In this document: piece after piece, positions 1 through 29,770 of the stretch
How positions within the stretch are numbered: position 1 is the first letter of the stretch
Layout of the letters: the number at the start of each line of letters is the position of its first letter
NCBI RefSeq assembly: GCF_003704095.1
Contig: NW_020843402.1
Location: forward strand, 372,001-436,000
Length of the DNA stretch: 64,000 bases
Source of the DNA: Pocillopora damicornis
Taxonomy: Eukaryota
Reading direction: 5' to 3'
Translations under genes and position numbers: made by a program
Notes under the pieces: model-generated
Told to the model about the DNA's origin: nothing
Database searches by the model: none
The model's input: only the letters and a program-made list of their open reading frames with translations

Positions 1-3000
1 GGAATACCCAAACCAGTTATCACATGGAGCCGAAATGGGGACGTGATTGAGGAATCTCTTTACAACATCATCGGAGATGGATACTTGCTAGTCAAGAGGC
101 TTGTGTTGTCCGACATGGGACCCTATCAGTGCTTTGCAGAAAACCACTTGGGAAAAATTCAGGCCACAGCAGAACTCAACGTTTACATGAAAGGTATGGA
201 CTAACAAGTCTATATTTTATCTCAGATCTTAATGTTAGATTTGGCAACTTCTGTCAGATGATTATCTTTAAGAACTTATTTATGTAACTTTTTTAAATCC
301 TTGTCACATAGGCCAACCGCTTCCATCATTACAAACCACAACTGCTCCGAATACAGAGAGAGCAGAGAAACCCATATCAGCATCTGTTTCAGATACGAAG
401 ACAGCGCAGAATACCGCATCGGCATCGTACACCACAGTTGAGCCAGAGACGACAGTAGCCTCAGAGAGCTCAACGAATTTAAGTATGACAACAACTTCAG
501 TGGCAACAGTAGTCCCAGTTACCGAGTCAATCTCAGATATTTCAACAGCCCAGGTTACTACTGCAGCACCAGATTCTACTCCAACTACAGATAGTACAGT
601 TGACGTGCACAGCTCAGCTGTGTCAGATCCTACAGTGACCTCAGATACTACAAAATTTTCAGTTATGACAGATGCGTTACAAGGATCATCGGCAGTGCCA
701 TACACCCCGTCTGCCATGTCAACCATTGCAAGTTTTGGAACAAGCCCATATCCCGTGAAGACAGCAACAAATAAGATTGCGACAAATCAAGACACAACAT
801 CAATTCCAAACTCGACAGCATCCTCAGCTGAACCCAAGACCTTACCTTCAATGGAGACCCTGGATACTACAGTAGCAAAACCAGATCTCATTACACTAAT
901 CCATGGTACCTCTGGAACCCCGGCTTCCACGAGAGTTGCGGATTCCATACCAGAGACCACAGATGCCTCAAAACATCCGTATTCTACAGCCGCGAAAGAT
1001 ACTGCATCAACAGTAGAAGCCACAAATACTGAGACTGTGACTGTGGCAAACCAATTCACCACAGCAATACGAGAAGTCATAACAACATCGGACGCTAGGC
1101 AACTTTCGCACCCCCCAACTCGAGAAATCACTGCTTTCCCAAAGGCAACCTCAGACTTTACAACGGAACCAGAACCAGACGTTACAGCTCCTCCGGTTAT
1201 AACAACAACACCAGATGTCCAGCACCGAGGTTTGAAATGTAAATTTTTTTGATGATCTTTCTCACAAGTTTGCCAACCGCGGCAAGCAGTGTGAGATTAG
1301 AAAAAGAAAAACGGGGACACCTCTAAGTTGTCATGGAAAGGGTGTTGCAAAATTCGTTTTTAAAGATCTATATTTCTTTTCAGTAAAACCTCATTTAAAT
1401 ACCTTTAGGGAACATAGTGATCGATGAAAAGCTATTAAGAAGTGGAATTAAAAAAAAAGGGTTGTCAAAACATTGCTATATGTATTTAATTGTGGTCGTT
1501 TCTGTTTTGGACCAATGAAAAATAACTCGCATGAAAACAAATTCGTGTAATGATTATTAGCAGAAAGTGCAATAAATAATTACTCTAACATTTCAACAGA
1601 TGAACTGCAACCTATTGTCAAAGAAAAAACCGTAAGAGAAGGCTCGATAAAAGTCATCAAATGCATAGCAACAGCAATCCACAAACCTGACGTAGACTGG
1701 TACAGAAATGGCAAGAAGTTGCCCACAATGAAGTGTTCCGAGTTAAATGACGTCAGATGCCAGGGAATTCCGTATGAAGTTTATGAAGAAATTAAAGAAC
1801 ACAAGTTTGGAGGAAAGAGCGCTAGGACTATAAAAGTTCTTAAAATACGAAGTGCATTATACTCGAGAGATCAAGGAGAATTTGAATGTATTGCAACAAA
1901 CGGTCACGCCCAACCTGCAAAATTAATCATTGATCTGAACGTCCTAGGTATGTATAAACTGAAAGCAGTATTTAACTTTTGTATTCGTACTCAAAATTTT
2001 GTTACCTGACACCCAGGTCTTTGACTCAATGATCTGGAAGGTTGGCAAAAATCATGTTTGTTTTATGTGCACACGTTTATTTCTTCATTGCACATTTTTT
2101 TCGGTTTCACAATGTTGATGCAAATGCAATTTCTACCATAATCCCCATCGGAGAATTTTGCTATCCTTTACCCTTAGACCTGCATCAGGGTAAGTCTTTT
2201 ATCTTCTAAAACTAAACCAATGCAGGTTAATTATCTTCTTCAGCTCCCCCCCGATTAATACAAAAGCCCGACAAGGTGCTCAGTAGTAGCGGCAAAGGGT
2301 CGAAAGTGTCTTGTGTGGTGAACAAAGGCAATCCTCTGCCAACATTCAAGTGGGAATACCAAAACACGGATTGTTTCACTTTCAACACGAGCTCTTGTGA
2401 CCCAGTTGAAAGTCAGTGGATGCCAGTCCCTGAGAGTCTAATAATGACTCCTCCAAACACACCGACAAAGAAGAGTGTGGTAAACGTTCAAGGCAATCAG
2501 CCAACTGCGAGCTTCAGGTGTCTGGCGTCTAATAAACTAGGAAGGGATTTTCATGTCATCAAACTTGTTCGAAGTGGTAAGAAATTTGTCTTTTCATATG
2601 ATCCTTAATTCTGAGAAAGTTACTCAAAATTCATCAGAATTCTTTTTATATTTGCTGATATACTTCACTTGTTTTTCTTGACAGTACCCTTGGCTTTTGT
2701 TAAGAAACCACAGAATATCTTAAAGGGATACCTGGGCCAAAAGATACTTATAAATTGCTCCACCAATGACCAAGATGCTACAGTGTCCCTTCTTTACAGG
2801 CGCCATCCATTTGTGGCCTTTGTNNNNNNNNNNNNNNNNNNNNNNNNNNNNNNNNNNNNNNNNNNNNNNNNNNNNNNNNNNNNNNNNNNNNNNNNNNNNN
2901 NNNNNNNNNNNNNNNNNNNNNNNNNNNNNNNNNNNNNNNNNNNNNNNNNNNNNNNNNNNNNNNNNNNNNNNNNNNNNNNNNNNNNNNNNNNNNNNNNNNN

Positions 3001-5647
3001 NNNNNNNNNNNNNNNNNNNNNNNNNNNNNNNNNNNNNNNNNNNNNNNNNNNNNNNNNNNNNNNNNNNNNNNNNNNNNNNNNNNNNNNNNNNNNNNNNNNN
3101 NNNNNNNNNNNNNNNNNNNNNNNNNNNNNNNNNNNNNNNNNNNNNNNNNNNNNNNNNNNNNNNNNNNNNNNNNNNNNNNNNNNNNNNNNNNNNNNNNNNN
3201 NNNNNNNNNNNNNNNNNNNNNNNNNNNNNNNNNNNNNNNNNNNNNNNNNNNNNNNNNNNNNNNNNNNNNNNNNNNNNNNNNNNNNTTAACTGTTCTACAA
3301 ATGATCAGGAGGCAACAGTATCTCTCCTATACAAACATCATCCGCTTGCTTCCTTCCATGAGCTGGACCTTAAACAAAACAAACTATCGAGGAAAGGAAA
3401 CGTTTTTACTTTACTAAATGTTGAACGCAGAGATGCTGGAATATATTCCTGCCAGGCGAGTAATCGGGGTGGTTGGAACATTCGATGGCCACCTGGTAGA
3501 GGATATTTGATTCCTATTCGAGGTAAGGTAATTTACAAGATTCAAGCCAATTTATTTAGGATTAAACATAACCTCAGCTTTCCGATGACCTTTTTCCTTC
3601 CATGATAAGGTTCGATAATCGTAACAGGCGTTACGGTTACAATGGTAATGTTGTTTTGGTCCCATAGTTTGTCTTTAATGCACCTTAGTTGTATGAGACT
3701 ACAAAGCCACCGCAAAGCCTGAACCATCAACGGGACAGCCTACTTACACTTATCATTTGAAATTTGCAAGGGCTTTTCCTTTATTTTTACAAGCATGCAC
3801 CTTTAATATTAATTTATTTATTCTGGCAGGTGGATCGCCAAATCACTTTGTTTTGAGGCCTGAAACACCACTTAATGTACAACAAGAGCAGCATGAATTT
3901 TTCGAGGGCTTTCCCTTACTCTTTCAAGTATAGACCGTTGATATTTATTAATTTTTTCTGGTAGGTGGATTACCAAATCATTTCGTTTTGAGGCCTAAAA
4001 CACCGCTCACTGTACGACAAGGGCAGCAAATAACTATTACTTGTGAATCAGAAGGTATCTCAGAGACCAAACTACACTGGATGAAACAAACCAAAACAGG
4101 AGATGTTTCTGTCCCAAGTAACCTTGTCACTGTTGATAAGGACAGATCCACAAATAAAGTTAGAGCCTTCCTTAAGATTTCAAATGTTCAGGCAGAAGAT
4201 GCTGGTGTTTACAAATGCGTGTTAAGGGTCTTTGACAAGACAGATCACAAGATGATTTCATTGTATGTTAGAGGTAATTTAAGTAAAACTTATGCAGTAA
4301 TCACGGAAAATGTAAATGTGGAGATCTCTTCGAACATTGATGAAGGCAAGGATTTTGTAGTCGAGTCCCAAACCACCATCGAAATATTACACAGATGCTT
4401 GAGCAAGTCCCTTTTGCTCTACAGGTTTCAGATCTTCACCTAGTCATATCGTTTTGGTTGCTTGCATGGTGCATACACGATTGAGTTCGTTTTATCATAA
4501 CTGCCTATGAGGAAGGCCAATAAGCAATCTTTTCTCATGGCCACCTCAAGGAAGGTAACGGTTTACGAGCTTACTTTTGTCCAAAAAGCTTTTCAGTTGC
4601 ATACCACTTACAAATCAATTTTTGTTTATTGTCAACTTTTTCGCAGAACCATTATCTTTCCTCGTTAAACCAGACGTGATTTTGCACGGATACCAGGCCC
4701 ATAGTTTGACATTAAACTGTTCCACTAACGACCGAAATGCTACAGTATCACTCTATCACAGACACCATCCCCTGGCACCTTTCAGGGAGCGAAAAATCGA
4801 CGCAAAGAAGGTTTTGTTAAAGGGTCAAGTATTTACACTTCTAAATTTAAGTCTAAAAGATCAGGGAACATACGCCTGTGAGGCCAAAACTGAGGAGAAT
4901 GAGAGCATACGCTGGCCATCTACAAGAGGTTACCTAATCGTGAGCCAAGGTAAAGAGAATTTGTAGAATCTTTGCACTTGTTTTTGTTCAGCGGTTCAGA
5001 TTTGTTTACAAATTTTGATTGTTTTCAAATTTAAGAGAGTTATTTTCGGCACCACTATTTCGTTTTAATTAATAATTAGTAAAGTATTATAAGAATAAAA
5101 ACCCATCATATCAGTAAAGCTGTCTCTCTAGGATGCCGTGTCTCAATCAAACTTATAATGACGCACTTTACTTTTAAATTCGCTTTAAGTGCAATGCAAG
5201 TTTGTTTCCTACAATGGACTAAAGGTGAATCATCTGCAAAAATCTGAATAAACTCTGGCAGTAACAGGCCACTACTCTCGTTCACTAAGACCAACTTTTG
5301 TTAGCCGAGTTGTATTAAACTCATATTTAAATTTGCAGCTCGAATCCCCGACTACTTTGAATTGAAACCAGCCAATCCGATCATAGTGCCGAAAGGTGGA
5401 AGTACAATTGTCACATGCGAATCAGAAGGAGTGTCAGAGATTCAGCTTCAGTGGAAGAAAGGAGATGTCAGTAATGGTAACGCGTCAATCCAGGACAGAA
5501 TGGTTAGTATTGTGAAAGACTGGTCCACCAACCGAGTGCAAGCTATCCTCAGGATTACGAACGCTCAAATGGAGGACAGTGGAGTCTACCAGTGTGTGCT
5601 AAGGGTATTTGAAAAGACGAGCATGAAATCTGTTGAGATCACGGTTA
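1..5647 (+). CDS. Partial multi-exon gene: multi-immunoglobulin-domain extracellular protein with a Ser/Thr-rich mucin-like stalk (VEGFR-ectodomain/hemicentin-like). 5' end is outside the window; 3' end runs into a gap
   Basis: Phase-1 GT-AG exons: <1-193 (I-set Ig GIPKPVITWSRNG...DMGPYQCFAENHLG), 312-1229 (Thr/Ser/Pro-rich), 1600-1947 (Ig, C..WYRNG..DQGEFECIATN), 2244-2576 (Ig, CVVNKGNPLPTFKW..FRCLASN), 2685->2823 (gap), <3286-3522, 3965-4273, 4647-4949, 5339->5647. Complete Ig exons show C...W or C...Y/FxC patterns. No TM or kinase exon seen. Confidence 0.88.
3765..3894 (+). repeat. Truncated tandem duplicate of the acceptor and 5' part of exon 3965-4273
   Basis: ttctggcag|gtggatcgccaaatcactttgttttgaggcctgaaacaccac (3821-3872) matches ttctggtag|gtggattaccaaatcatttcgttttgaggcctaaaacaccgc (3956-4007). 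Upstream intron sequence agggcttt.c is also repeated. Confidence 0.85.
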
Positions 5648-7338
5648 NNNNNNNNNNNNNNNNNNNNNNNNNNNNNNNNNNNNNNNNNNNNNNNNNNNNN
5701 NNNNNNNNNNNNNNNNNNNNNNNNNNNNNNNNNNNNNNNNNNNNNNNCCTGCCAGCAGTGTTTGGAGTTCAACACTGACATGATTTTATCTAAAAAACGC
5801 TTTTACTTGAAATATCCATGTCATGAAATGTGTTTATGCAGGGCTGATGTTTTTTTTAAGATACGTTTTAGAAAAATACTCCCCAAACATCCTAATCTTT
5901 TGTTATAAATGGGTAAATTATTCAAGTTAAACCATCTTCGGCCTGTTTATCGTTATAATTTTATTTTTGTAGGGACATATGGACTTAAGCTTAAAGAATA
6001 TCTCGACGCTCAAGACATCTGTACGAATAACAATATTCACGCCCACTCTAGAAACGTGACTTATCCGCCAATAATTCACTTGAAAACGAAAGCCCCAAAA
6101 GTTAAAGTCACATAGCTAAACCTTAGTAAAAGGTATAACTTAAAACCCTTCTTTTGTACCAAAGTAGAATGTTTGTGAGTATTTTTGAACATTGCATGTC
6201 GTGTTCCTGTGCTCTACTCCGCTTTCTGCCACAAATGCTGCGATCTGATTGGCTATTTGCCAGCTATTTCGAGTTAAATATTTGAATAAAGTAAGTTATC
6301 TAACATTGTGTGGTTGTCAACAAAATAAAATAAAAACATGATATTGTCATGTTAGATTTTCAACACCTAGAAGAATTATTCAGGAAAAATTCGATTATTG
6401 GCTCTCGATTTCTGTGCGTGATACTTTTTTCAAGCTTCACCTTCGTCAACTATCATGCGTTTGAAATCTCAAGCTTAAAGCGTAGTTTTTAACTCATGTG
6501 GGTCGGTCGTGACAAAAATTACCATCTGAACGGGTATCCTAATTCCAGGCGAAAGAGCCGGCACGTACGAGATAACGTGACTCAGTTCCTAAACTGACGT
6601 GTTGTTGTTAATACCTATGATGCAACTTCCCGGAAATATTTGGTATTTACGTACATTGAACTTATCTTCTGGCCACCGATTTGATAGTATCGAGATATGT
6701 CTGCTAATGGTGTTATGGCAAACTGACACTTTTTCATCTTTCGTGTGAAGCGCAAAAGTAGCGGAGTTCGAGGCTTAAACATGATCTTCGGTTTATATTA
6801 TGTCACTTGAAATATTGAACGAAAAACTACAACCTCTCAGCCGTTACAACTCATTAAATGACGGAGATAACCGTGCTTCAAACATCGATAACTTTTGTTG
6901 AAGTAATCAAGTTAACCCCATCGATTTTTCTTTTACATTTTCACATCAAAGGCTTCATTTCAAGCTCATTTCTATATGTACAAATGGCAAACAAAATCGC
7001 ACGTTCTGGTGATGATTCTAGAGATGAGATGACCTTTAATAGAATTGTAAAATGCAGAAAGCCAAACTCGGACAAAGCTTTTTATTATTTTTTCCGTATC
7101 TTTGTACAAACACGCAAAATGCTTTGTAGGCGGGAAATATTAGTGGATATTGCGTGAAGTATTTCAGTCCGCCTTTATTAAGGCAAAGAAAAGTCACTCT
7201 CCTGCTTACGACCAGGAGAATTTTTGTATTAATGTAATTTAAATGTCCTTTCTATTTTATTCAGAAGCTTTCGTTCAAATTTGATTTTTTTTGAAAAGAA
7301 CAATCCTCACTCCTTAATTGTTAATCACCAAATTAAGT

Positions 7339-8340
7339 TCAACGAGAGCCTCTCATCCATAACTTTATGCACAAAAAACGATTGAACATTTCCTTCAAAG
7401 CAGTAAGGAAATTTGTGCTCGACACGAAAAGTATTATGGGGTTGATTGCTGCTGGTAAAGATGGCAATATGTAAAATAACAAACCTAGTACAAGCAAACA
7501 AGAGTCTCTGTCTTGCGATGGGTAAACTGCTTCAAGTAATATTAGATATACAACAATTGAAGTCCAGCAGACGAAAAAGACCACGACAATTGATGCAAAG
7601 ACCTTCATAATATTCTGGTTTTGTTTGTGATTTCTTGCTCTTATCTTATTCAGCGCTTGGTCCTGCTCATCAGTGACACGTCTTGATCGCTTCAAACTTT
7701 TTATGATCTTGGTATAAAGAACGATGATCAAAACCAGGGGGGTACAGTAGAACATAACAAATCCAATAGCATAGAATACATAGCGGTTCTCCGCTTCCCA
7801 CGAAAGCGAGCAGAGTGGTTGATTCTCATTAAGCCTAACGATCCGTAAGAATCTGAGGTATGGTACAGCTAGTAGTAACGGGATGATCCAAGTCAGTGCC
7901 AATGAAACAGCTCGGGGTCGAGTCTTTTCCATCAGAACTTTAGCCTTAAGTGGATGAACTACAGCAACGAACCTCTCCACGACTATACCGACTAAGCTGA
8001 AAACTGAAATAACCTGTGACACGCCTCTGAAATACAGACTTATTTTACAAACAGCTGTGGCTGCTGGATCATCGATCAAATGTTTCCCTGACAGCATCCC
8101 CTCAGTGGCGTACAGCGGCCATGTGCTCACAGCGGACAATAGATCCCCAACGGCCATGTTAACAATGAAATAATTTGTACTTGTCCTAAGGGTTTTGTTG
8201 GTAAGAAAAACTGCAGTCACCAAAATATTGCCGACCAACGAAAAAATGCTAACAACAGAAATAGCTGTTGTGATCAAAGCAGAAACGATGGGAGAACAAG
8301 TGGACTGGTTCTCGAGAACATAGCTACTAGAATTATCCAT
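7339..8340 (-). CDS. Rhodopsin-class (family A) orphan GPCR, intronless CDS, paralog 1
   Basis: Seven hydrophobic segments; GN in TM1, NMAVGDL in TM2, C...ERF in TM3, W in TM4, FYCTP in TM5, FFVCWTS in TM6, INPIILF in TM7. Likely start MDNSS at 8340, N-terminal N-glycosylation sequons. Confidence 0.93.
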   Translation of the reverse strand: MDNSSSYVLENQSTCSPIVSALITTAISVVSIFSLVGNILVTAVFLTNKTLRTSTNYFIVNMAVGDLLSAVSTWPLYATEGMLSGKHLIDDPAATAVCKISLYFRGVSQVISVFSLVGIVVERFVAVVHPLKAKVLMEKTRPRAVSLALTWIIPLLLAVPYLRFLRIVRLNENQPLCSLSWEAENRYVFYAIGFVMFYCTPLVLIIVLYTKIIKSLKRSRRVTDEQDQALNKIRARNHKQNQNIMKVFASIVVVFFVCWTSIVVYLILLEAVYPSQDRDSCLLVLGLLFYILPSLPAAINPIILFVSSTNFLTALKEMFNRFLCIKLWMRGSR

Positions 8341-10282
8341 TTCTTGGTCTGAACGGAGGCCTAAACACAAAGAATATCGACACCACACCTGCGATCCTTC
8401 GACTGTCGTCATAAAGGTTAAACACAAACAACTAAGAGTTGACTGTTTTAAAAAAGTGATTCTTGATATTTTGTGAGTTTATTATGCGCAGCGTAATAGC
8501 GTCACGACCCCTGGCTTAAAGGGGAATATTATCAAATACTATCAAATACTGTGACATGGTTATATCAGCTGTATATGCAAATTCACTGGACTAAAGAAAG
8601 TATTTACATGAGTATAGGGTTTAAACCAAACTGGAATGACTTGGTTCATCGACATGAATATCATTTTACCGACATTAATTTAGCGTTGTAGTGCTGAAGT
8701 TGGTTCAATCTAGTAGAGAAAGGAACGTAGAGTAGTGGAAATCAGATACACTGATAAGTTTAAATACCGAGCCAATGTGACAGAGTAATAAGGTGTTATT
8801 AATTTCTGTGACTTTGATAATAGGCACAATGTTGGACTGCATGATCATACGCAGAGAGCATTACGCAAGTTTGAGTGCGTTAAAATATAAAACGGAAGTT
8901 CTAGAGATTTCTTTGACGCCATTCAAATTGCAAAATCAGTTCAATGCGCAAAATCGACACATCGTAGTGGACTATTTCTCCAAAACTCGCAGGACTCAAA
9001 GTTATATTTCTTCTAACAAAGTATTCACCACTGGTCTTCTGTAGGTGTTAGTAGTCTAGTTTTCACTCGCCGCGTCGTGTTCCTTGGAAAGACCAATGCC
9101 TTTGGTATAGAGAGATGTCTCGCGAACAAGTCTCTCTTACAATGGGCCGTATGCCCGTGAAAACGTAGCTCAACGGTGGGGTAGAAGAAAGAAATTAATA
9201 CTCTGTCTTCGTTTAGGTGAAAAAGGTCTCTTACCAAGGATCGCTTGAGGGATGTTGAGAATTAACTTCCTGTGTAATGTTGGAACAATTTTATTACTGT
9301 AAAGACAGATTTGCTTGAACGGGAAAAACAACAGTATGTAAATATAAACCGCATTAGTTTTAACAGCAGTTCTACTGAATAATGCCCATAACACTGACTG
9401 AAATCAATTCAAAAAGTTGACGAAAAGCCAGAGAAACTAAGCAATTTAACATGTTTATTAACCTGAAGGATTTATTTGTCAGTTCCGATGACTCAGTGTC
9501 TTCTATGATCCACATCCTTAGTATAAGGTTAATGCATTTCCAGTACAAGAGCCATGGTGGTTCAATGAAGTGAGACCAGTTTTTGCATTGAACTGACTTC
9601 GCAAAGTTTTAAGACAGAATACTAAAGTTCCCAAAAGCCGGGTCTCTCTACCTAGTGGAAGAAATGTAAGAGATTCAAACAAAAGCCTTGAGTAATTACT
9701 TTTGAAAATTTCTAAGCGCCTCAAACTTGAGAGAGTAAACTTTAATAGACAAAACCAACTTGATTTTCCATATGATAATTCATTGCGGCTAAGCCCTGCC
9801 AACCTTTTTACCTTAAGTACGTCGATCTGACGTCATCTAATAAATCACAACTCAGGGCCTTAAAACTTCCTGTTTATGAAAAAGTTTCTCGTTACTTTGC
9901 TTGTCGTCATCAGAAGAATACTTAAATTTCTATTTTAAAGTCTTCAAAAGAAAGGAAACGAGGTAGGTATCTACTTAATCTACTTAAGTCGTTTTATCTT
10001 CAAACGGCAGCAAAAACATCCAAGGAGGTTAAACAATTAGAAACAAATGAAGAAACAACACGAACAAGCCAATTGGTAATTAAGCCGAGAGGAGACGTAA
10101 ATAAAATTGTTTGGATAAAGTGGGTGTGAAAACATTTCACCCTATCATTAGTAATGGAAAGTTTTACCGTAAAGTCTATTCAGAAGTTAAGAAACACAAC
10201 CTTGTAAAAAGTAGCATTTAAGTGTCGACGTTAGGGAGCCCGTGATTAAAATTCCTCTTTGCAAAACCTGACAGCAATTTCC

Positions 10283-10289
10283 TATAAAA
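10283..10289 (+). promoter_or_regulatory. Candidate TATA box of the hydrolase gene
   Basis: TATAAAA about 70 nt upstream of the ATG at 10354. Confidence 0.45.
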
Positions 10290-10353
10290 ATTTATGTAGA
10301 ACTACATTATATGTGGTTTAATTGTTGGTTTAGATCTCCTCTTGCGAGCTGTG

Positions 10354-11448
10354 ATGATGAAGGTTCTTTCCATGGTCCTCGTGCTGCTGCTAAGGCTTTT
10401 CGTTACAAACGCCTGTACCGAATTCCGCTTGACTTCCGAAGATAACTCGGTGGTCGTCGGTCGGAGTATGGAGTTCTTCGATCTAAGGTATGATCTCGTT
10501 GTAGAACCTGAGCAGTATCCTGATATAGCGATTCCTAAGAAAGAATGCATCGTTCATTCCCCATCGCTTCTACAGTGGAAAAATAAATATAGCATTGCAT
10601 ACGTCAACGCTTTGGACTTGCCCGTAGCTACCGATGGTTTTAATGAAGCTGGTCTTTCTGTTGCTGCAAACCTCTTCGTTGGCTTCGCCCATTTCCAGAA
10701 AATACCGGTCGAAAAATGCCACATGGCGGTGTCTTCTTTGCAGCTTCCATTGTGGATTCTTGGAAACTTTGGGACAGTTCAGGAATTAAGGGATGCTTTG
10801 AAGAAGGACACTTTCCCTCTGGTGTTTGAGTTTAACCTTCCTGAAAAGGTTAAGAAAATCCTTCAGCTTCACTATTCCATCGTGGACGCTTCTGGGGATG
10901 CTATCGTTATTGAGTTTACTGAACAGGGGAGAATGGTATTCGACAACACTCTCGGCATCTTAACTAACTCCCCGCCCTATGATTTCCATCTAATGAACGT
11001 CCGCAATTATGTTGAACTTTCCAAATCGGCCCATGATTCTCTGGTGTTGGGCAAAATGACGTTCGAAGCTACTGGCCAAGGAAGTGGACTCCTAGGAATA
11101 CCCGGTGACTTCACACCGCCATCAAGATTTGTACGCGCGGCTGTCATGGCTCATTTTTCCGATCAAGTCCAGACAGGCAAAGACGCAGTTATCAAGGCTT
11201 TTCACATCTTGAATACCGTTGATATACCCCGCGGAACGTCCTTTGATTACACTGTTTGGTCTGTTGTCAAAGACTTGACGACAAAATCGCTTTATTTCCG
11301 ATTCTACGATGACCTTACCATTTGTGTACTTCACATGAATGACGTCAAGAAAGACAAAAGGCTGAAAATGAAAATGAATGAATGCATTGGTGGTTTTGTT
11401 AACATAGCCAAAGACCTCAAGCTGGCCATGGTTCATGATGAACTTTAG
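10354..11448 (+). CDS. Choloylglycine hydrolase / penicillin V acylase family linear amide C-N hydrolase (Ntn-hydrolase), with signal peptide and C-terminal HDEL, intronless
   Basis: MMKVLSMVLVLLLRLFVTNA|CTEFRLTSEDNSVVVGRSMEF: nucleophile Cys (10414) directly follows the signal peptide. Family motifs DGFNEAGL, LHYSIVDASGDAIVIE, GILTNSPPYDFH..N..NY, GLLGIPGDFTPPSRFVRA, AFHILNTVDIP. Ends VHDEL*. Confidence 0.93.
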   Translation: MMKVLSMVLVLLLRLFVTNACTEFRLTSEDNSVVVGRSMEFFDLRYDLVVEPEQYPDIAIPKKECIVHSPSLLQWKNKYSIAYVNALDLPVATDGFNEAGLSVAANLFVGFAHFQKIPVEKCHMAVSSLQLPLWILGNFGTVQELRDALKKDTFPLVFEFNLPEKVKKILQLHYSIVDASGDAIVIEFTEQGRMVFDNTLGILTNSPPYDFHLMNVRNYVELSKSAHDSLVLGKMTFEATGQGSGLLGIPGDFTPPSRFVRAAVMAHFSDQVQTGKDAVIKAFHILNTVDIPRGTSFDYTVWSVVKDLTTKSLYFRFYDDLTICVLHMNDVKKDKRLKMKMNECIGGFVNIAKDLKLAMVHDEL

Positions 11449-11794
11449 GAAACTCCATGATGATTCATTGAAAATTCTCAATCAGAGAGAATTTTCGGTC
11501 AAACTCCGCCGTTCAAACAACAGACTCTTGTGTGATTGTGTGAAAGAGTCTGCTAGGAGCAAAATCTCTTGTGTGATTCTAAAGTGTGTACTCTAGTATA
11601 ATATCTTGTGTGATGTAGAAGTGTCTCTCATGAAGAGCGATATGACTTGGGAGTGTTTGCCTAAAGCATAAGGGAACCTTAATGTAATTTCGAGTGTGTT
11701 CCACAAGGAAGAGCTCTAATGCAACTTGGAGGGTGTGTCAAAGTACAATTTAAGTCTGTGTGATTTGGAGTTGTACGCTAGAAGCAAGGAACAA

Positions 11795-12066
11795 TGTTCA
11801 ATTGAGTGTCGTGAGTAATCCGAGATTGTGTAGGTTATGCTTTTCTTCACTCTGTGATTGGTCCAGAAAACTTGCACCACCTTCTCAACTAATCAGATAC
11901 AAAACTAAAACCAATCATGAATTGATCGCCCACGTTCTCCCGCTGCAGATAGTTTGGTAGTTTTTACTTTGAGTTCTCATTGGCTCTTAGGGGTATTTTC
12001 TTTCCTTCTGATTTTGGCCGTCGGGATTACTTTGGTTTTAGTTTTATAAAACCAAAAAGTGCTCTT
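11795..12066. repeat. Interspersed non-autonomous repeat, family B copy 1
   Basis: ttcactctgtgattggtcca...ctcaactaatcagatacaaaact...cgttctcccgc aligns in reverse complement with 29600-29770. Confidence 0.65.
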
Positions 12067-12462
12067 AAATATTGTGTGATTTAGAAGTGTGAGCCAAAAG
12101 CGTAATTTAGACAAAGGGAAATTATCATTACATAATTTGGAAGTGTGTGTGAGATATTCCATGTATGATAAGTCCTTAGATAATCTTTTTCAAGACTCTG
12201 TCTGAGGAAAAATAATAGACAACTTTATTCAAGAAGCTGTGCTAAAATTAAATGATAAAACGCAGACCACGGTGTCTTAAGAATATTACTCAACTTAATT
12301 TTTAAATATCCCCATAGGAAATCAAAAGTAAATTCATGACATAATGTTTTAAACAAATCTGCAAACTGTATCGCTGTAATTAAATCCCTCGTTCATATAT
12401 ATTCAGTGCGCCATTGACTTAAATCCAGTTTCTTCTGCTGGAAGGCCACCAGCTTCAACTAG

Positions 12463-13470
12463 TTAACTTTTCTCTTTTCTGCCACAGAAGAATCTCCCGA
12501 GAGAAAACATCCACAATTTACGCAGGGCTTGACGGAAATTCGTGCTGAATGCAAATAAAATAATTGGATTAATTACTGAACTTAGCGACGGAAACACAAA
12601 ATAAGCGAACCCAAGAATCCACTTGCATTTGTCTTTGACGAAAAGTTCAGGAAATGTCATCTTGAGAATCAAATAAACGAAAAAGGAAGAAAAAGAAATG
12701 AAAAACATAACAACGATTGATTTGAATATCTTCAAAATGTTTCGGTTTTGCTCATTTCTCCGATATTGATAAGAACTGCTGTCTCTCGCACCAGTTCCTG
12801 GTTTAATCCTTTTTTGCAAAACACTCATAACCCGCGAGTAAAGAATGACAATGGCAATAATTGGTGCGATCTCAAACAACGCCAAACCAGTAATATAATA
12901 TATCATGAGAGCACTGCTATTCCATGCAAATTTGCAATAAGTTTCTTGACCAAAGTCTTCGGCTCTGGAATAATACAGCATCGGGAAGCAGTATGCCATT
13001 GATATCGTCCATGTCGCAAACAGCAGAAATGTTCTGACTTTCCCAGTGACCAACGTTGATTTTAATGGGAACACGGTAGCGATGAATCTATCCACAGCGA
13101 TCAACACCAGGCTCAGTATTGACACAATAACTGACGTCATTCTGAAAAATACTCCCACTTTGCAACCAGCAGTGGCCAGAGACCCTTTAAACAGACTTCC
13201 TCTGCTCGTTATGATCTCGTTTGAAAGATAAAGCGGCCAAATGGTGAGGCTTGAGAGAAGATCAGAAATGGCCATGTTGACGTAGTAGTAATTAGTACTT
13301 GTCCTAAGGCTTCGAGTTTTGTACACTGCAACGATCACCAGAATATTTCCAAGTACAGCAACCATGCTTAGGAAAGCCGTAGATGTTGTGAAAAATATAG
13401 AAATAGTGTCAGGGCATGGTGAATCACTATCACTGAAATTCATCATCGTATGGCTGTAGTTGTTTGTCAT
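12463..13470 (-). CDS. Rhodopsin-class orphan GPCR, intronless CDS, paralog 2
   Basis: 335 aa; GNILV, RTSTNYYYVNMAISDL, C..DRF, ETYC in ECL2, INPIILFAFSTNFR. TM6 CWxP is replaced by SFSS. Confidence 0.93.
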   Translation of the reverse strand: MTNNYSHTMMNFSDSDSPCPDTISIFFTTSTAFLSMVAVLGNILVIVAVYKTRSLRTSTNYYYVNMAISDLLSSLTIWPLYLSNEIITSRGSLFKGSLATAGCKVGVFFRMTSVIVSILSLVLIAVDRFIATVFPLKSTLVTGKVRTFLLFATWTISMAYCFPMLYYSRAEDFGQETYCKFAWNSSALMIYYITGLALFEIAPIIAIVILYSRVMSVLQKRIKPGTGARDSSSYQYRRNEQNRNILKIFKSIVVMFFISFSSFFVYLILKMTFPELFVKDKCKWILGFAYFVFPSLSSVINPIILFAFSTNFRQALRKLWMFSLGRFFCGRKEKS

Positions 13471-16280
13471 GATAAGCTCAGTCTTCTGGAAAATGTTTTG
13501 TTTGTTTGTTGTAAACCGCTCTGTTGGATGGCTTCAAAATTAGTCCCACTTGACTGAAAAAGTTAAGACGCATTTATAAGCTTAAATATAACCCAGATAT
13601 CAATAAGCTGCTTGAAAAAAAAACTTTTTCTCGTTGTAATTTGTAAATGTCATAAATCAAAAGTTCAGGAGATAAAATTGGGATTTTTAACCCAACATTA
13701 AGCATTACATGAATAGTAAAATGGCAGTCCATGCCTACACCTGCAAGAAAATATATTTCTGTTAGAGGATGTTTTCAACAAAACGATTAACCTGCGAAAG
13801 GTAACCTTGATTCCTTCTAAAAGCAATGTAGAGAATCGTGGTGTTTCCAGTTCTTTCTGCAGTTTTTGTATACGGGAAATTTCTAGGACATCACGAAGGA
13901 CGTCCACCATGGAGCAGAACGGCTAACTTTCTGCCTCGCAAACTACATCGCGGCAAACGTTTCTTGAAAACTTACTTCACGAACTTCAGAAATGGACAAA
14001 ATAATAAAGGCCGAAATAAATGTTCATTAATTTTGGTCACCATATCCGCATGTTATGTTTGGGGATTATTTATGGCAAATATCCACAGTAAATTGCACAA
14101 TATATTTGAACGGGAACTGCGACAAACTTGCGAATGAGTTTTAATGACCATTGCGAGATAACGAGCACATCGACATTGTCAAATAGTTTTGGGCCATTGA
14201 ACCATAGCAAACTGTAAGAAACGTGAAAGAAATATTGATGTTATTGCTAGATATAATTTGGGCTTTAACTGCAATTAAAACTCCAAAACGTTTGACCTAC
14301 GTGAACCATTGAGCGAGTGCAATATTTTAACGCAAATTAAATTTGTCGCAAACATAATGTACATAACACGTTCTTCGATTTTTTTTCTATTCGCTTAAAA
14401 ATGATAACATTCCAAGGATCAACATCCTGTTACGTATTGATTTAACACACGGGATAAGGCTACAGAAAATGTAAAGAAATCTTACCTCAGTTATAACACT
14501 GAGATATTTCGTGATCAAAAGAACTCTAGCAAACAGTTATTGCATTAATTAGGTTAGATTCTTAAGTCACGTTTGCGTCTCTAACACCCTAAAGAATGGC
14601 TTTATCCATGTTTTCATTTTTCCTGTAGGACTGCCTTTGTACAAAAAGATAAAAAATGAAATGTTATTTAACTGAAACTCTTTTAAAGCTGGAACTTTTT
14701 TTTGGTTGAGAGGAAATACTGAATTTTCAGTCCTACACCTAATGCACCTGCTCATATTTTCAGCGGACAATTTTCTAAGAATCGATATTTCACTATGGTG
14801 TGTCAACAAGGACAAACATGAAACTTATGAGTAACCAAAAATTGGCATTTAATTGAATTCGCAGAAAAAGAAAACAGAGCTGTGAACTGATATACAAATT
14901 AAATATATAGGAAAAAGGCAACGTCGAGACGAAATCTCTTATTCAAAGAAAAAATATCTCCCAAATTGATGCTCTCTCATGTCAAGTTCGTACAAATTGT
15001 GACTTACCGCTTACTTACAGCTTAACCGAATGATGTATTGATATCAATCCGCAAAACTTGAGGCGCAAAAGAACGAGAATATTGACACCTCTGTATATGG
15101 TTCGAAATACAAATGAAATTGTCAGCCAATTCTCGTCATGTTATTGGATGTATGAATGTGTGCACGATTAAGAACAAACAAATTGACAGGGAGTCCGCAT
15201 TATGAATAATTTTTAGCTCTGTCATTTAAAACCATAACAGGTCCAATATCCTCATGCTACAAAGTAAAACTTACTTCTACTTTATATTGCATTAGGTATA
15301 TATTTGAAGGACTTTGTTTTTCGCAAACGACTCTTAACTCATTTGGATCAGAAAAAAGTGGAAATAAATAAGATAACTGCACTAAGATGTATATGTTATT
15401 GTGCTGTGGGAAAAAAAATGACATCAAGTGAGCATTAACGGCTGCTCTGTGGAGAGGAAACATTTTGGTTAGGTTACTCAGTCACGTCAAAGTCACAACA
15501 ACTAAACGCTCTCAGCTGTACTGAGCTCACAGGTATCACATCATAAGCTTGATGTTGAGACAATGAAAGATGCTACTTTTCATTTTCTGTGGTTCTTTTC
15601 TTACGATTTCTTTCCTCAAGAGAACACAAGAATACATGTCATTACCTCGTTATCTCTGAACAAACTTATTGATCACTGTCATTTGACATCTGTTATAAAA
15701 TGTGATTAGGATGTTGTTGCCTGATGGGAAAGAGGTTTTGAAAATGTCTATGCAAAAATACTTTTTTGAAAACGGGTTTCCTGTTTACGTTCTACCCAGT
15801 ACCTTTTCCTTTTAGGCAGGAGTGATTAAGTTAGGGTTGAGATGGAATACGTAAACGTAATTCATTTTATTTATTTGACATCTTAACAATTCTAAATACA
15901 AAAGTATATCCCTAACATAAAGAGACATGATTTTGACATTAAATGTTTTACAAGCATTATCGGATTCAGGCCGACCACTTCTTATTTCGTAAGATTTCCC
16001 GGCTGATACTGGAAAACTAAGTTATTAACTTTAAGACTGATCATTATTCACTGTATCATGGTTGTAATTAACAATAATAACACGCCAAATTGAAGTCGAC
16101 TTTTTATACATTTTATTTCATTGCGCAATGTTTTGCAATCCTTGTAAGATTGAGAAGTTTCCATTCTCTTTTTTGAACTACAGCTTTTTGTTGCTGAATT
16201 GTTGCAATCTCGTGGCTTTTCTGCTATGACCAGTTATTTATTATCAGTGTTTTTCCAAATCCGTCAAATATGAGAGACAT

Positions 16281-17342
16281 CTAGCTTAACTCTGCCTTAC
16301 CAACATGATCTATTTCAACTGATCCAACCCTATTCTTGGGTATGCACAGAAACCGGCGACATTTATTGAAATCAAGAAAAGGAATACGAAAGCTTTTCAT
16401 CGCCTGTCGAAATTTTGAACTAAACTGGAAAAGGATAACAGGATTGACTGCTGTGCTGAATGACGGAAAGACGTAGAAAAACAAACCTAGGAGTAAGAAG
16501 CATTTATCTTGAAGAAACAACCCTGAATGAAACATTTTTAATGCCAAATAAATGCAAAGTGGTGTCCAACAAGTAAAGAAGCTGGCAACAATTGATGTTA
16601 AGATTTTCATTAATTTCCGATGTTGATCTCGTCTTCTTCTGATATGCTTTTCTTGGACTGAGTTTCCTATGTTTGGACGATTTTTAAGTGTCTTTGTGAT
16701 GTGAGTATAGAGAATGGTTATACCAGCAAGAGGCATGCAATAAAATATAACAAATCCAACAGCATTAAAAATTATGTGAGCTGATGCACTCCAAACTACT
16801 CTACAGAATGTTTGGTTATTTACCTTCACAATTTCAGCGAACGTGTAATATGGGTAAGCAAAGCAAACAGGAATGATCCAAGAAAACAACAGTAAAATAA
16901 CTCGAAATTTGCCATTACTCATTACCGTTATCTTTACTGGGTGAACGATAGCCGCATATCTGTCGACGGATGTTAGAACCAAGCATAACACGGACACTAT
17001 TTGTGAAATTGCCCTGAAGCAAATTCCCAGTTTACAGAGAATTAAGGCAGAGTGTTGGTTGAAGAACTCAGCTCTTGTCAGCATTCCTTCAACTGCATAA
17101 AGTGGCCAGCTAAAACATGCACAAATGAGGTCAGACATGGCCATGTTGATTATATAATAATTAGTCCTCGTCCTCAGGTTGGGAGTTTTGAAAAAACTTG
17201 CAATGATGAGAACGTTGCCAATCAGAGCCGCGAGTGTGACCATGGATATAATAACTATAAATAGCGTGGACACCACGTTAGAACAGGGTTGGCTTGGACT
17301 GGGGTGACTCAAAGTAGGCGTAGAAAAACTGGAAATATTCAT
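16281..17342 (-). CDS. Rhodopsin-class orphan GPCR, intronless CDS, paralog 3
   Basis: Start MNISS at 17342; GNVLI, NMAMSDL, DRY, FYCMP, FFTCWTP, VNPVILF. Confidence 0.93.
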   Translation of the reverse strand: MNISSFSTPTLSHPSPSQPCSNVVSTLFIVIISMVTLAALIGNVLIIASFFKTPNLRTRTNYYIINMAMSDLICACFSWPLYAVEGMLTRAEFFNQHSALILCKLGICFRAISQIVSVLCLVLTSVDRYAAIVHPVKITVMSNGKFRVILLLFSWIIPVCFAYPYYTFAEIVKVNNQTFCRVVWSASAHIIFNAVGFVIFYCMPLAGITILYTHITKTLKNRPNIGNSVQEKHIRRRRDQHRKLMKILTSIVASFFTCWTPLCIYLALKMFHSGLFLQDKCFLLLGLFFYVFPSFSTAVNPVILFQFSSKFRQAMKSFRIPFLDFNKCRRFLCIPKNRVGSVEIDHVGKAELS

Positions 17343-19550
17343 TGCTACACGTTTCGCAAAGAATTGTGACGATGCTGAACTGTGGGAACAACAAAGAAAA
17401 CGTACAAATGAATTAATTACAAAAGGAAGATAAAACAAGTCTTTAGATAGAATAAGAGAGATGGCAAGTTTTGAGCTCGGTAAACGATCATTTCAAAGTG
17501 CGACAGAACCTCGCTAGCTAACATCTACCGTTTTTCTACGCCATTGTATCATTAAGGAGAAAAAAGATGTCACACTTCGAACTTACACCAAGTACGTTAA
17601 GAGTTACAAAATGCGACAATCTTCTCAAACAAAGTGCAACCGAATGACTGTTGAGGTGACGATCGAACTAACTAAAGTCAAGACTGTCCGATCTTACAAA
17701 TAGCCAAGTTTCAGAGGTCACCTACTGAAAACCGATTGCCAGATTGCGTTACATTAATCAAGAAGCAGTACGATCAAGTATACAACCAACTTTAGATGAA
17801 CCAAAGTCTAAAATAACGATGTCGCCCTTTTTCGTAGTTCATTTAGCAACTACATAACGCTTCTTATTAATTTTAACCCTCGTTTTCATGACATATCCTC
17901 TAAAGATAATACAAAACTAAAGGCACCCACCTCATCACAGTCGTCTGTTATCTTAGCCGGGAGATTTCGACGCGAAGTGACTCAACATCTTTTTGTAAAT
18001 CACGTTTCCCCGATGTATTTATATCTTACACCAGCGATATTTGTCTTTCTATTATCATATAACATTTTCCTTTTTTAACAGTGTCATAAAAATTAGCATA
18101 TTTCCTTGCTTCCCTCTCAGCTATCAATCATCAAGGGAATACATTTATTTAACTGATTGGTTTTTTTTCTAGTTGTGAGGAGTCTCTTTTCATAATTGCT
18201 TTACGATTGCTTTCGCTTTTCGCTTTAGTTGTGAGAATAATAGGAAAAGGTTTTCATTCTTTAACAAATAATAGGTCATTTGAACTGAATAAAAGGAAAT
18301 TAAAAGGGGTCGAAAGTAAACTCATCATACCTGTCACCTCAAGAGAGTTTTCAAAGCTTTGAACAAACGCGTATTAAGAAATTGAATGTGAAAAAATGAA
18401 AAGAAAATTGCCTCTGCTCTTCCAAAAGCTGAACCAACAACAGCAGCAAGCGCAATTTTACTGTATGTCAATTTTAATTTTCTTAATTGGCCATTAACAT
18501 TTTCCATGCTTACTCATACGACAACATCATATTTTGATCACGCACAACTTCGCATATCGTCATCAGAGCTAAAATTGCAGGCGAAAATGCTTTTAAAGGA
18601 CATCTTGAACTGGTTTTCACTATCGTTCCTAGAACTGAGTCTAACAGGAAGTCTTTACATGTGAAATAGTTGTTTGCTATCCACCATTTTTATACCTGAA
18701 ATTTATATACTATTATTTGATGGCCGATGTTTTTTTTTTCTTCTGCCACGGGAATCGTAACATTAAATGAAACGAGGGGGTTTAGGTAGAACTTCTTGCT
18801 TCGCCAGGAAGATTTCAAACGAAAAACGAGGTAACGAGAAACAGGAGAAGGAAGGAGACAACGGAAGTAGGTAACACTAAACAAACAAGAATCATGACAA
18901 CGAATAAGTGAGGGAAAACTAACAGGTATTGAAAACCGTCCAAAAAATGTGACGAGTTTCGTGTTGTTTAAACTGATAAGGAAGTTGTTTTCATTTATGA
19001 TACACAGTAGTTGTCTGTTACGTGATTCTGGGTATTTTTCGATCCCTGTGGATTACTGAGCTTACTGCACGTTTGTGAACCTGAAACAGGCAAAAATATT
19101 GGACTATTAATAGCTAGTTATAGTTCGCAAGTTTTAAGCTAATCAGAGTAAAGCTCTCGTAACAGATCACACTCTATTGTTCATGGCGTGGGGCCTATGT
19201 CTAAGAGCGCTATCGTAAGCTATCTGCTATAGTTAATACCTCTTTTTTGAGTTCCCGATATTGGTGGCTTACGAGAGCTTAAACCATCTTTTTTCCTATT
19301 ACATTAAGAACTGGGATTTGGGATTTGAATTACTTCAGACTGGTAAAAAAATGGCGAATATAGCAATAACGGAGAGCAATTTGGATATATATTTGACCAT
19401 ATGTGTATTTGCATAAGAACACGTAAATTAATTAAATACAAATTTTATAGTACTCAGACCGAAGCCACAAACACGAGGATTTGTCAAGAGTCTGTCTCTA
19501 TGTGTTACTCCCTTTCTTTTCTGATTTTGGATTTTCTTAACATCGTAGTT

Positions 19551-29599: not shown

Positions 29600-29770
29600 A
29601 AAAGAAAAGCAAGGCAAATACTGCCTGGAGCGCGGGAAAACGCGAGTGACCACGCAGGGTCAGTTTTGAATCTGATTGGATGAGAGGATAGTTTATCTAT
29701 TTTTGACCAATCACCGAGTGAAGAGGGGAAACCAATGCGATCCAGGATTACTTTTAACTCATAGTCAAAG
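29600..29770. repeat. Interspersed non-autonomous repeat, family B copy 2
   Basis: gcgggaaaacg...agttttgaatctgattggatgag...gaccaatcaccgagtgaa...ggattact is reverse-complementary to 11795-12066. Confidence 0.6.

Follow-up and report, generated by a model that had tools for sequence, protein, structure and literature searches.

A bacterial-type CBAH amidase gene with a spliced 5'UTR and an ER-type C-terminal tail in a pocilloporid stony coral

The window is a stretch of 64,000 nucleotides of the Pocillopora damicornis genome, and hosts an open reading frame of the CBAH family (Pfam PF02275) between two intronless rhodopsin-type GPCR reading frames on the opposite strand. Features of the locus are collected in Table 1. 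The CBAH reading frame is intact over 364 codons, the region around it is gap-free (zero N bases in 8000-14000), and both flanking genes are GPCR genes, all as read in the first-pass annotation. The repeat found 3' of the gene had been said to recur at 29.6 kb. A match does exist there, but it is a 63-nt inverted piece (11844-11906 vs 29662-29724), 78% identical, of a high-copy dispersed repeat. No AATAAA or ATTAAA polyA signal was found in 11449-12100.

Table 1. Coordinates of the features of the CBAH locus, given as positions in the window
Feature	Position	Strand	Evidence
Rhodopsin-type GPCR ORF, intronless, upstream neighbour	7342..8427	-	Pfam 7tm_1, E=1.1e-45
5'UTR exon 1 (minimum extent, RNA contigs)	9855..9962	+	X1 record 4 (9855-9960) and X7 record 24 (9905-9960), both joined to exon 2
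5'UTR intron, 371 nt, GT..AG, GC 0.34	9963..10333	+	Junction in RNA contigs
5'UTR portion of exon 2	10334..10353	+	RNA contigs restart at 10332/10334; first exon 2 ATG at 10354
CBAH/Ntn-hydrolase precursor CDS	10354..11448	+	ORF list: 364 codons plus stop, uninterrupted; Pfam PF02275
Predicted signal peptide, residues 1-20, predicted cut TNA/C	10354..10413	+	Hydrophobic core
Codon of Cys21, predicted as nucleophile at the N-terminus of the mature enzyme	10414..10416	+	Invariant in 61 sequences
HDEL codons, ER-retrieval-type tail	11434..11445	+	Translation; extreme C-terminus
3'UTR (minimum extent)	11449..11870	+	RNA contigs reach 11860-11877; contigs break at the repeat
High-copy dispersed repeat, 3' of the CBAH gene	~11743..12136	.	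Depth of X15 260-300 vs ~5.6 in flanks; many loose ends
Rhodopsin-type GPCR ORF, intronless, downstream neighbour	12466..13470	-	Pfam 7tm_1, E=3.7e-41

RNA contigs from three studies cover the exons, and leave the 5'UTR intron and the flanks empty. The RNA evidence comes from one polyA run and two runs listed as RNA, the listing being a guess for one of them. The splice joint, from 9960 to 10332 (cut +2), is present in all three runs, and absent from the DNA-like run X15. The donor reads GAG/GTAGGT at 9963, the ends of the intron are GTAGGTAT...TGGTTTAG, and the acceptor TGTTTAG/ATCTC is kept in a contig of another coral (L097). The gene had been described as intronless; this holds for the coding region, but not for the gene, since the 371-nt GT..AG intron is spliced from the 5'UTR. 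The TATAAAA element (10283-10289) noted upstream of the reading frame sits inside this intron; hence it did not serve as promoter for the transcripts seen. A uORF in exon 1 was considered as a second signal peptide and discarded, as it resembles the genuine signal peptide no more closely than shuffled sequences do (p ~0.25).

An intronless CDS whose closest non-animal relatives are bacterial (42-43% identity, among the matches listed), and whose GC3 (0.49) is slightly over that of the adjoining GPCR reading frames (0.37-0.46), might suggest contamination from bacteria, a chimeric assembly, or an insertion of very recent date that only this assembly carries. Against this stand the removal of the 5'UTR intron in polyA RNA, the even depth (~5.6 over 8000-13900) of the DNA-like run, in which the gene is covered as are its flanks, and a 2.26-kb contig of the same run (9616-11877) collinear with the window. 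The GPCR/CBAH/GPCR order and the single reading frame are found also in contig L097, the one contig used for the comparison of synteny, in which the CBAH protein is 71% identical. A cluster of 350 members holds proteins 98% identical from many independent samples, and orthologues reside in Stylophora and Acropora. Splicing, synteny and orthologues already refute contamination, misassembly or a very recent insertion, to which we assign next to no probability; the checks on polyA RNA, gene order and depth that the first-pass annotation had called for thus ended in favour of the gene. Comparison of the CDS with that of L097 yields a dN/dS of 0.19 at a dS of 0.80. The reading frame belongs to a genuine gene in the nuclear genome of a pocilloporid stony coral, and this gene is expressed.

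Residues 21-331 of the protein correspond to positions 1-306 of the 316 of the PF02275 profile (E=2e-57, 195.6 bits vs a gathering cut-off of 20.4), and the match begins exactly at Cys21. The 20 residues which precede it make a predicted signal peptide, as originally proposed for the segment ending in TNA directly before CTEF. Residues 4-17 have a mean Kyte-Doolittle value of 2.79, and T and A are found at positions -3 and -1 relative to Cys21. Among 61 homologues, 51 have A at -1, and the residue at -3 is T, S or A. In the AF2 model (pLDDT 86, pTM 0.86) residues 2-15 are drawn as a helix, and residues 1-20 have lower confidence (mean pLDDT 72 and 62).

Cys21 aligns with position 1 of PF02275 and with Cys2 of the Clostridium perfringens bile salt hydrolase (BSH) 2bjf. 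The remaining catalytic equivalents of BSH enzymes and of penicillin V acylase (PVA), recognised already at first reading, are Arg37 (in GRSMEF), Asn97, Asn205 (in TNSP) and Arg258 (in SRF). Cys21, Asn97 and Arg258 are invariant in the 61 homologues, Arg37 and Asn205 invariant or nearly so. Where BSH and PVA have Asp20/21, the coral protein has a Glu (Glu40), and so do at least 90% of the 61 homologues in the alignment, those from bacteria among them. The best Foldseek matches are PVA and BSH structures (E ~1e-28, TM 0.73-0.86), which feature the Ntn-hydrolase alpha-beta-beta-alpha fold. Scores obtained with the NCBIfam equivalogs for BSH (NF038245, 191.1 bits) and for YxeI-type penicillin V amidase (NF058572, 169.7 bits) are below the respective cut-offs of 350 and 600. 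Judged by profile, residues and fold, the protein is a CBAH-family Cys-Ntn linear-amide hydrolase, predicted to enter the secretory pathway. CBAH enzymes have broad acyl-amide specificity.

Among solved structures the closest are Gram-positive BSH and PVA (E ~1e-41). The C. perfringens BSH and the Lysinibacillus sphaericus PVA (3pva/2pva) share with the coral protein the fold (TM 0.7-0.8) and the catalytic Cys, Arg, Asn, Asn and Arg; they differ in being cytoplasmic and devoid of a signal peptide, and are ~25-29% identical to it in structural alignments. The first-pass annotation had stressed the affinity to PVAs of Gram-negative bacteria. These periplasmic proteins are exported CBAHs, in which Cys1 is freed by signal-peptide removal, and those of Pectobacterium and Agrobacterium have AHL (acyl-homoserine lactone) acylase activity. 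The claimed affinity is not borne out, as Pectobacterium 4wl2 (E=2.9e-12) and Agrobacterium 5j9r (E=2.2e-18) are far more distant than the Gram-positive enzymes, and are not the nearest branch. The lysosomal ASAH1 and NAAA belong to the same Pfam clan, share the same chemistry and act on N-acyl amides, but their genes have many introns, and the proteins feature lysosomal targeting and an alpha chain before the Cys, which is removed by self-cleavage. Only 20 residues precede the Cys in the coral protein, and the 32 solved sequences that it matched at E<=0.01 include neither an ASAH1 nor a NAAA chain, so that the distinction initially drawn from these enzymes stands.

The best named matches are from stony corals, followed by Hydractinia and Thermodesulfobacteriota at ~42%. 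The bacterial proteins are exported CBAHs from marine Thermodesulfobacteriota/Dadabacteria MAGs (e.g. L014-L017, P0082), which align at full length with 42-43% identity and resemble the coral protein in length and catalytic residues. Their signal peptide measures ~24 residues and ends in ...SNA/CTEFRL, a junction almost as in the coral protein. They end in ...DVTxxLKxxE, without the xDEL extension. A clade made by stony corals, Hydractinia and other eukaryotes is monophyletic in all three trees (FastTree, 228 rows, support 100; quick IQ-TREE PMSF, 109 rows, 100; careful IQ-TREE LG+G4, 56 rows, 100/100), and is nested among bacterial lineages, in groups with support of 98 and 94/93.

The composition of the clade bears on whether the family passed from bacteria to cnidarians, or is of ancient eukaryotic origin, with vertical descent and many losses or with exchange among eukaryotes. 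P0207, a eukaryote-like protein encoded on megabase contigs, belongs to the clade, and so do sequences from short contigs resembling transcripts, whose tails are KTEL or RDEL. A search with P0207 yielded no named eukaryote, and the names obtained from protein clusters for non-coral sequences were Hydractinia and a Cercozoa MAG. A possible sister is a protein of Cercozoa with KDEL at its end, a common origin having p=0.40 in the AU test (56 rows); donor and number of transfers are therefore uncertain. An ancient eukaryotic family is nonetheless quite improbable, as it fits poorly with the supported nesting of the clade among diverse bacterial lineages, and with a signal peptide and N-terminus nearly the same in the P. 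damicornis protein and in those of Thermodesulfobacteriota. Moreover, no other animal phylum or fungus is named among the best 120 matches, and no match was reported in human, fly, worm, yeast, Nematostella or Hydra (Hayward 2011, PMC3204972). The trees fit an old acquisition from bacteria. Most likely, the family descends from a bacterial ancestor taken up in the distant past, earlier than the split of complex and robust corals, and its acquisition probably predates the coral-hydrozoan split. The first-pass annotation saw a bacterial-type amidase domesticated in an animal genome after horizontal acquisition. The gene is indeed a CBAH amidase gene, nested in bacteria, integrated and fixed in a stony coral; its acquisition is old rather than recent, because the family is common to complex and robust corals and to a hydrozoan. 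The 'penicillin acylase' ascribed to horizontal transfer in Mnemiopsis (PMC6005172) was evaluated as a relative and set aside; it belongs to the unrelated PF01804 family, which has no match in this genome.

The coral protein is 49% identical over 365 residues (E=2e-127) to P0337, which is XP_029207486.1, the AmNtNH1 protein of Acropora millepora (PMC12924552). AmNtNH1 corresponds to AET09722.1, transcript A5 of Hayward 2011, who reported for this Acropora member a signal peptide, a tail reading KEEL and an affinity to bacteria (PMC3204972). According to the accounts in PMC12496222 and PMC12924552, Mason et al. 2024 (Curr Biol 34:3226) named AmNtNH1 and found that it inactivates AHLs. AmNtNH1 is reported to be induced by MDP, a bacterial cell-wall fragment (PMC3723955), and members of the NtNH family are expressed in settlement-stage ectoderm (PMC3204972, PMC12924552). 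A 'penicillin V acylase' is included in the planula proteome of Pocillopora acuta (PMC12960093). The coral NtNH family, its bacterial ancestry, and the destruction of quorum signals by one member have thus already been published (2011, probably 2016, and 2024).

AmNtNH1 and the P. damicornis protein belong to the same cnidarian clade, and share the signal peptide, the Cys directly after it, the CBAH domain and an ER-type tail, which is KEEL in the former and HDEL in the latter. The P. damicornis protein groups with Stylophora P0002 and Acropora P0006 (99). In contrast, the close acroporid relatives of AmNtNH1 (P0065, P0061, P0059, P0058) form a separate subclade (100), restricted to acroporids among named members; two of them, P0065 and P0061, are found with the P. 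damicornis protein in the eukaryote clade (100, 100/100). Gene structures differ too. On contig L099, the CDS of an AmNtNH1-type gene (97% identical) is interrupted by a phase-0 intron after codon 114, whereas the P. damicornis gene has an uninterrupted CDS and an intron in the 5'UTR. From sequence comparison and tree position, the P. damicornis protein is a member of the cnidarian NtNH family, and a paralogue, not an orthologue, of AmNtNH1. It resides in a different subclade, and its substrate may therefore differ; in the accounts of Mason et al. 2024, AHL inactivation is attributed to AmNtNH1 only. AHLs are a reasonable guess as substrate, because the AmNtNH1 reported to inactivate them is 49% identical. 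All in all, we are fairly confident that the locus carries a functional, expressed coral CBAH gene of the cnidarian NtNH family, derived from an old bacterial ancestor and paralogous to the AHL-inactivating AmNtNH1.

The protein ends in HDEL, as first noted and as translation confirms. ER-type tails (HDEL, RDEL, HTEL, HDEF, KEEL) are found in 58 of 70 coral homologues, and in 0 of 80 bacterial loci; the coral tail is an extension past the bacterial C-terminus. Conservation of HDEL in related genomes had been suggested as a check, and an ER-type tail is in fact kept in orthologues and paralogues alike. Tails in the orthologue group are HDEL, RDEL, HTEL or HDEF. The PROSITE pattern for ER retrieval is [KRHQSA]-[DENQ]-E-L; HDEL fits it, HTEL and HDEF are outside the strict motif. 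Members of one subclade end in HDELR or HTELR, and Hydractinia members have a hydrophobic tail in place of the ER-type one. The genome encodes a KDEL-receptor homologue (PF00810 match on C2763). In the accessible parts of the literature, Mason et al. 2024 aside, the tail is noted for Acropora A5 only, and its conservation or location is not analysed.

These features suggest the following route. The gene is expressed as a two-exon mRNA with a single 5'UTR intron, and the precursor would go into the ER, where signal peptidase would cut after Ala20 and thereby activate the enzyme, leaving Cys21 as free N-terminal nucleophile. The oxyanion hole would be made by Asn97 and Asn205, with Arg37 and Arg258 supporting the site. 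The bond split by the enzyme would be the amide bond of an N-acyl amide, most likely that of an acyl-homoserine lactone or of a lipid amide like it. Through HDEL, the KDEL receptor would bring most of the protein back from the Golgi to the ER, and the enzyme would then work early in the secretory pathway, on substrates able to permeate membranes, or escape from secretory ectodermal cells. The ER lumen is an odd place for an enzyme directed against external bacterial signals.

Two other readings concern substrate and location. The enzyme may be a true ER resident, which serves not in quorum quenching but in the cleavage of endogenous N-acyl amides of the lumen (amides of lipids, N-acyl derivatives of amino acids or of taurine, or N-acylated proteins). 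The conservation of the tail across paralogues and orthologues despite saturating synonymous divergence, the broad specificity of CBAHs, and the fact that the protein is not the orthologue of AmNtNH1 are consistent with such a role. We regard it as rather unlikely, as no candidate endogenous substrate is known, and the sole assayed member of the family inactivates AHLs, according to the accounts of that work (PMC12496222, PMC12924552); the induction of AmNtNH1 by a bacterial cell-wall fragment (PMC3723955) and expression of the family in settlement-stage ectoderm (PMC3204972, PMC12924552) point the same way. Alternatively, most of the enzyme may be secreted, to end up in the mucus or on the surface used for settlement, with a tail that is leaky, masked or removed. 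A role against external bacteria has been proposed (PMC12496222, PMC12960093), the final R of the HDELR/HTELR subclade would mask the signal, and Hydractinia proteins lack the tail. Still, a retrieval-type tail is strongly conserved in 58/70 coral sequences, which makes secretion a doubtful, if possible, main destination. AHLs cross membranes, and hence secretion is not required for a role of the enzyme in their degradation.

The theme of an animal co-opting a bacterial enzyme against bacterial signalling is already in print for the Acropora paralogue, and the NtNH family bears on the control of the coral microbiome, on larval settlement and on disease. What is added here is a second, pocilloporid paralogue group, marked by splicing of the 5'UTR, a CDS free of introns, a conserved order of genes and purifying selection. 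Since the ER-retrieval tail is kept across most coral paralogues, we tentatively propose that coral amidases derived from bacteria may work inside the early secretory pathway, either as a sink for membrane-permeant AHLs or on an endogenous luminal N-acyl amide. If so, paralogues with other C-termini (HDELR, the hydrophobic Hydractinia tail, tail-less proteins) would be sent elsewhere. The family-wide ER-type tail, absent in bacteria, turns the site of action of these enzymes into a testable question.

The choloylglycine hydrolase (CBAH) gene of the window is, as the first-pass annotation had read it, an intact, uninterrupted ORF of 364 codons counted from the first ATG. The encoded protein, whose exact sequence is already present in NCBI nr, matches the Pfam CBAH model over residues 21–331 (E=2e-57), profile position 1 being Cys21. 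Residues 1–20 form a predicted signal peptide (mean hydropathy 2.79), with T at -3 and A at -1, the latter found in 51/61 homologues, and the protein terminates in HDEL. The catalytic residues are in place: C21, N97 and R258 are invariant in 61 homologues, R37, E40 and N205 nearly invariant. Where bile salt hydrolases (BSH) and penicillin V acylases (PVA) have Asp, this protein has Glu40; of the 61 aligned homologues, at least 90% also have Glu. The closest solved structures by sequence are C. perfringens BSH and L. sphaericus PVA (E about 1e-41), and no ASAH1/NAAA chain was matched in this search. The AlphaFold model (61 homologues as input) is confident (pLDDT 86, pTM 0.86), and PVA and BSH structures are its first Foldseek matches. 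The protein scores below both NCBIfam equivalog cut-offs (BSH and PVA), and is far in sequence from the solved Gram-negative PVAs degrading acyl-homoserine lactones (AHLs). It has therefore been filed at the family level only, as a paralogue, not an orthologue, of AmNtNH1 of Acropora millepora (XP_029207486.1, see PMC12924552; 49% identical). Over codons 44–70, most differences between Pocillopora RNA contigs and the window are non-synonymous (L44V, R45G, V49F, D57H, P70Q); this segment may form a variable loop at the surface, close to the N-terminal lobe.

Contigs of three RNA runs (a polyA metatranscriptome, random-primed RNA-seq, and a third listed as RNA only by guess) join 9962 to 10334, skipping 371 nt with GT..AG ends. 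Thus the gene, initially called intronless, is so in its CDS only, and the TATAAAA at 10283–10289, taken as an upstream element, is intronic. A DNA-like run gave a 2.26-kb contig that is unspliced and runs collinear with the window, and the depth of this run is even (~5.6) across 8000–13900. In the RNA runs coverage is on the exons, with none in the intron and in most flanking bins; the RNA signal can therefore not stem from DNA carry-over. The hydrophobic upstream ORF was considered as a second signal peptide and rejected, its similarity to the real one being that of shuffles (p about 0.25).

Features of the CBAH gene and of the surrounding receptor (GPCR) cluster in the window
Feature	Position	Strand	Remarks
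TGACGTCA	9828-9835		just upstream of exon 1; candidate promoter element only
AATAAAT	9839-9845		just upstream of exon 1; candidate promoter element only
Exon 1	at least 9855-9962	+	RNA contigs
Upstream ORF	9876-9938	+	20 codons; in 5'UTR exon 1
CBAH ORF	10354-11448	+
GPCR ORF	7342-8427	-	rhodopsin-type, intronless
GPCR ORF	12466-13470	-	rhodopsin-type, intronless
GPCR ORF	16284-17438	-	rhodopsin-type, intronless
GPCR ORF	19554-20582	-	rhodopsin-type, intronless
GPCR ORF	29923-31017	+	rhodopsin-type, intronless

The region is gap-free (0 N bases between 8000 and 14000), and the CBAH gene is flanked by GPCR ORFs, as had been noticed. These belong to a cluster of five which surrounds it, and which is present also in L097, a contig of another coral carrying an orthologue (protein 71% identical). 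L097 keeps the GPCR(-)/CBAH(+)/GPCR(-) order, and its CBAH gene is one uninterrupted ORF, with the acceptor TGTTTAG/ATCTC directly before the start codon, as in the window. The two genes diverge with dN/dS 0.19 at dS 0.80. GC3 of the window gene (0.49) is only slightly higher than that of the adjoining GPCRs, and among named proteins the nearest are those of stony corals (Stylophora, 77%; Acropora and Oculina, about 57–60%; Montipora, 49%). Altogether, these data exclude contamination, chimerism, recent insertion and pseudogene status. An insertion not shared by the window, a zf-RVT (reverse-transcriptase-associated) ORF at 11970-13547, separates the CBAH gene of L097 from the downstream GPCR. 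Stretches 70–79% identical shared by GPCR ORFs (16883-17149 with 20144-20410, 20192-20433 with 30087-30328) point to local duplication. The repeat reported to recur at 29.6 kb turned out to be a 63-nt, 78%-identical inverted match, a piece of a high-copy dispersed repeat at ~11743-12136, where depth is ~50x that of the flanks in the DNA-like run and every contig breaks; the repeat is abundant in RNA runs too. Immunoglobulin domains match the ORF at 2766-3602 (+) weakly (E about 1e-4); this ORF is probably one exon of a larger gene.

Among prokaryotes, the closest relatives (42–43% identity) belong to marine MAGs of Thermodesulfobacteriota, Dadabacteria and 'Deltaproteobacteria'. These proteins are exported, and their signal peptide ends ...SNA/CTEFRL, which is nearly the junction of the coral protein. 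Three trees were built (FastTree, 228 rows; IQ-TREE LG+C20 PMSF quick, 109 rows; IQ-TREE careful LG+G4, 56 rows). In each of them, the coral sequences fall without exception into one clade, which also takes in four hydrozoan or hydrozoan-like ones (three from Hydractinia) and a few eukaryote-like sequences (support 100, 100 and 100/100, respectively). This clade lies within a group (support 98; 94/93) including Thermodesulfobacteriota/Dadabacteria, Legionella- and Coxiella-like Gammaproteobacteria, Planctomycetota, and a symbiont-like lineage residing on a dense ankyrin-rich contig. The most economical history is a single old acquisition from bacteria with later duplications. Eukaryote-to-eukaryote transfer steps are possible, and a sister position of a Cercozoa MAG protein with a KDEL end is not rejected (AU p=0.40). 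On an Acropora-like contig (L099:3074-4666), a gene of the AmNtNH1 type (97% identity to AmNtNH1) gained a 486-nt phase-0 GT..AG intron after codon 114, a sign of long residence, whereas the CDS is uninterrupted in the group of the window gene. The AmNtNH1 family is reportedly widely distributed in stony corals and of bacterial origin by lateral transfer.

Bacterial homologues end at ...DVTxxLK(xxE); coral proteins extend 5–12 residues beyond, finishing in xDEL-type tetrapeptides. ER-type tails mark 58/70 full-length coral-like matches (most commonly HTEL 24, HDEF 14, HDEL 4, RTEL 4, RDEL 3, KEEL 2), and 0/80 bacterial loci. HDEL, RDEL, HTEL or HDEF are found in the orthologue group of the window protein, HTEL, HNEL or HSEL in a second eukaryote subfamily (nucleophile context CQE). 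The tail signal is therefore a conserved trait, restricted to the eukaryote side. Hydractinia proteins carry no ER-type tail, and one finishes in a hydrophobic stretch. Three metatranscriptome proteins forming a coral-like subclade (P0062, P0073, P0135) end in HDELR or HTELR, in which the extra residue would mask the retrieval motif unless trimmed. A KDEL-receptor homologue is encoded in the genome. The second CBAH locus of the assembly (234.35 Mb, 4,393 contigs), at G000:C3436:6460-9143, is 99–100% identical to P. damicornis XP_027053848.1 and has an HTEL tail. An inverted copy of the gene's first half (84% identical) interrupts the locus, leaving aa 1-190 on one side and aa 190-339 on the other. 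The inverted piece lies between 100-N gaps (6917-7016 and 8477-8576), and so looks more like an artefact (scaffolding or haplotig) than a true duplication.

The finding is real and had been interpreted largely correctly, but the coral CBAH family is already published. A. millepora transcript A5 codes for a CBAH protein of 369 residues, whose closest similarity is to bacterial choloylglycine hydrolases; this protein has a signal peptide and, as putative ER-retention signal, KEEL. A5 is unmatched in Nematostella and Hydra, and at settlement its expression forms a band in the larval ectoderm (Hayward et al. 2011, PMC3204972). It is induced by MDP, a bacterial cell-wall fragment (Weiss et al. 2013, PMC3723955). 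The A5 product was named AmNtNH1 by Mason et al. 2024 (Curr Biol 34:3226), and is described, in later papers, as a quorum-quenching hydrolase inactivating AHLs (PMC12496222, PMC12924552). The coral HGT candidate 'Seriatopora_10994 penicillin amidase, Anthozoa, 100, Bact' (Bhattacharya et al. 2016, PMC4878875) probably belongs to the same family, because no PF01804 penicillin amidase was found in this genome. In the Pocillopora acuta larval proteome a 'penicillin V acylase' is planula-enriched, and quorum interference has been proposed (PMC12960093).

Identity, expression, selection, ancestry and tail conservation of the gene rest on tool results; cleavage site, location and substrate are inferred. 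The protein would be a secretory-pathway Cys-Ntn amidase, in which removal of the signal peptide would expose Cys21. The enzyme would cleave N-acyl amides, most likely AHL-like molecules, and HDEL would hold it largely in the early secretory pathway.
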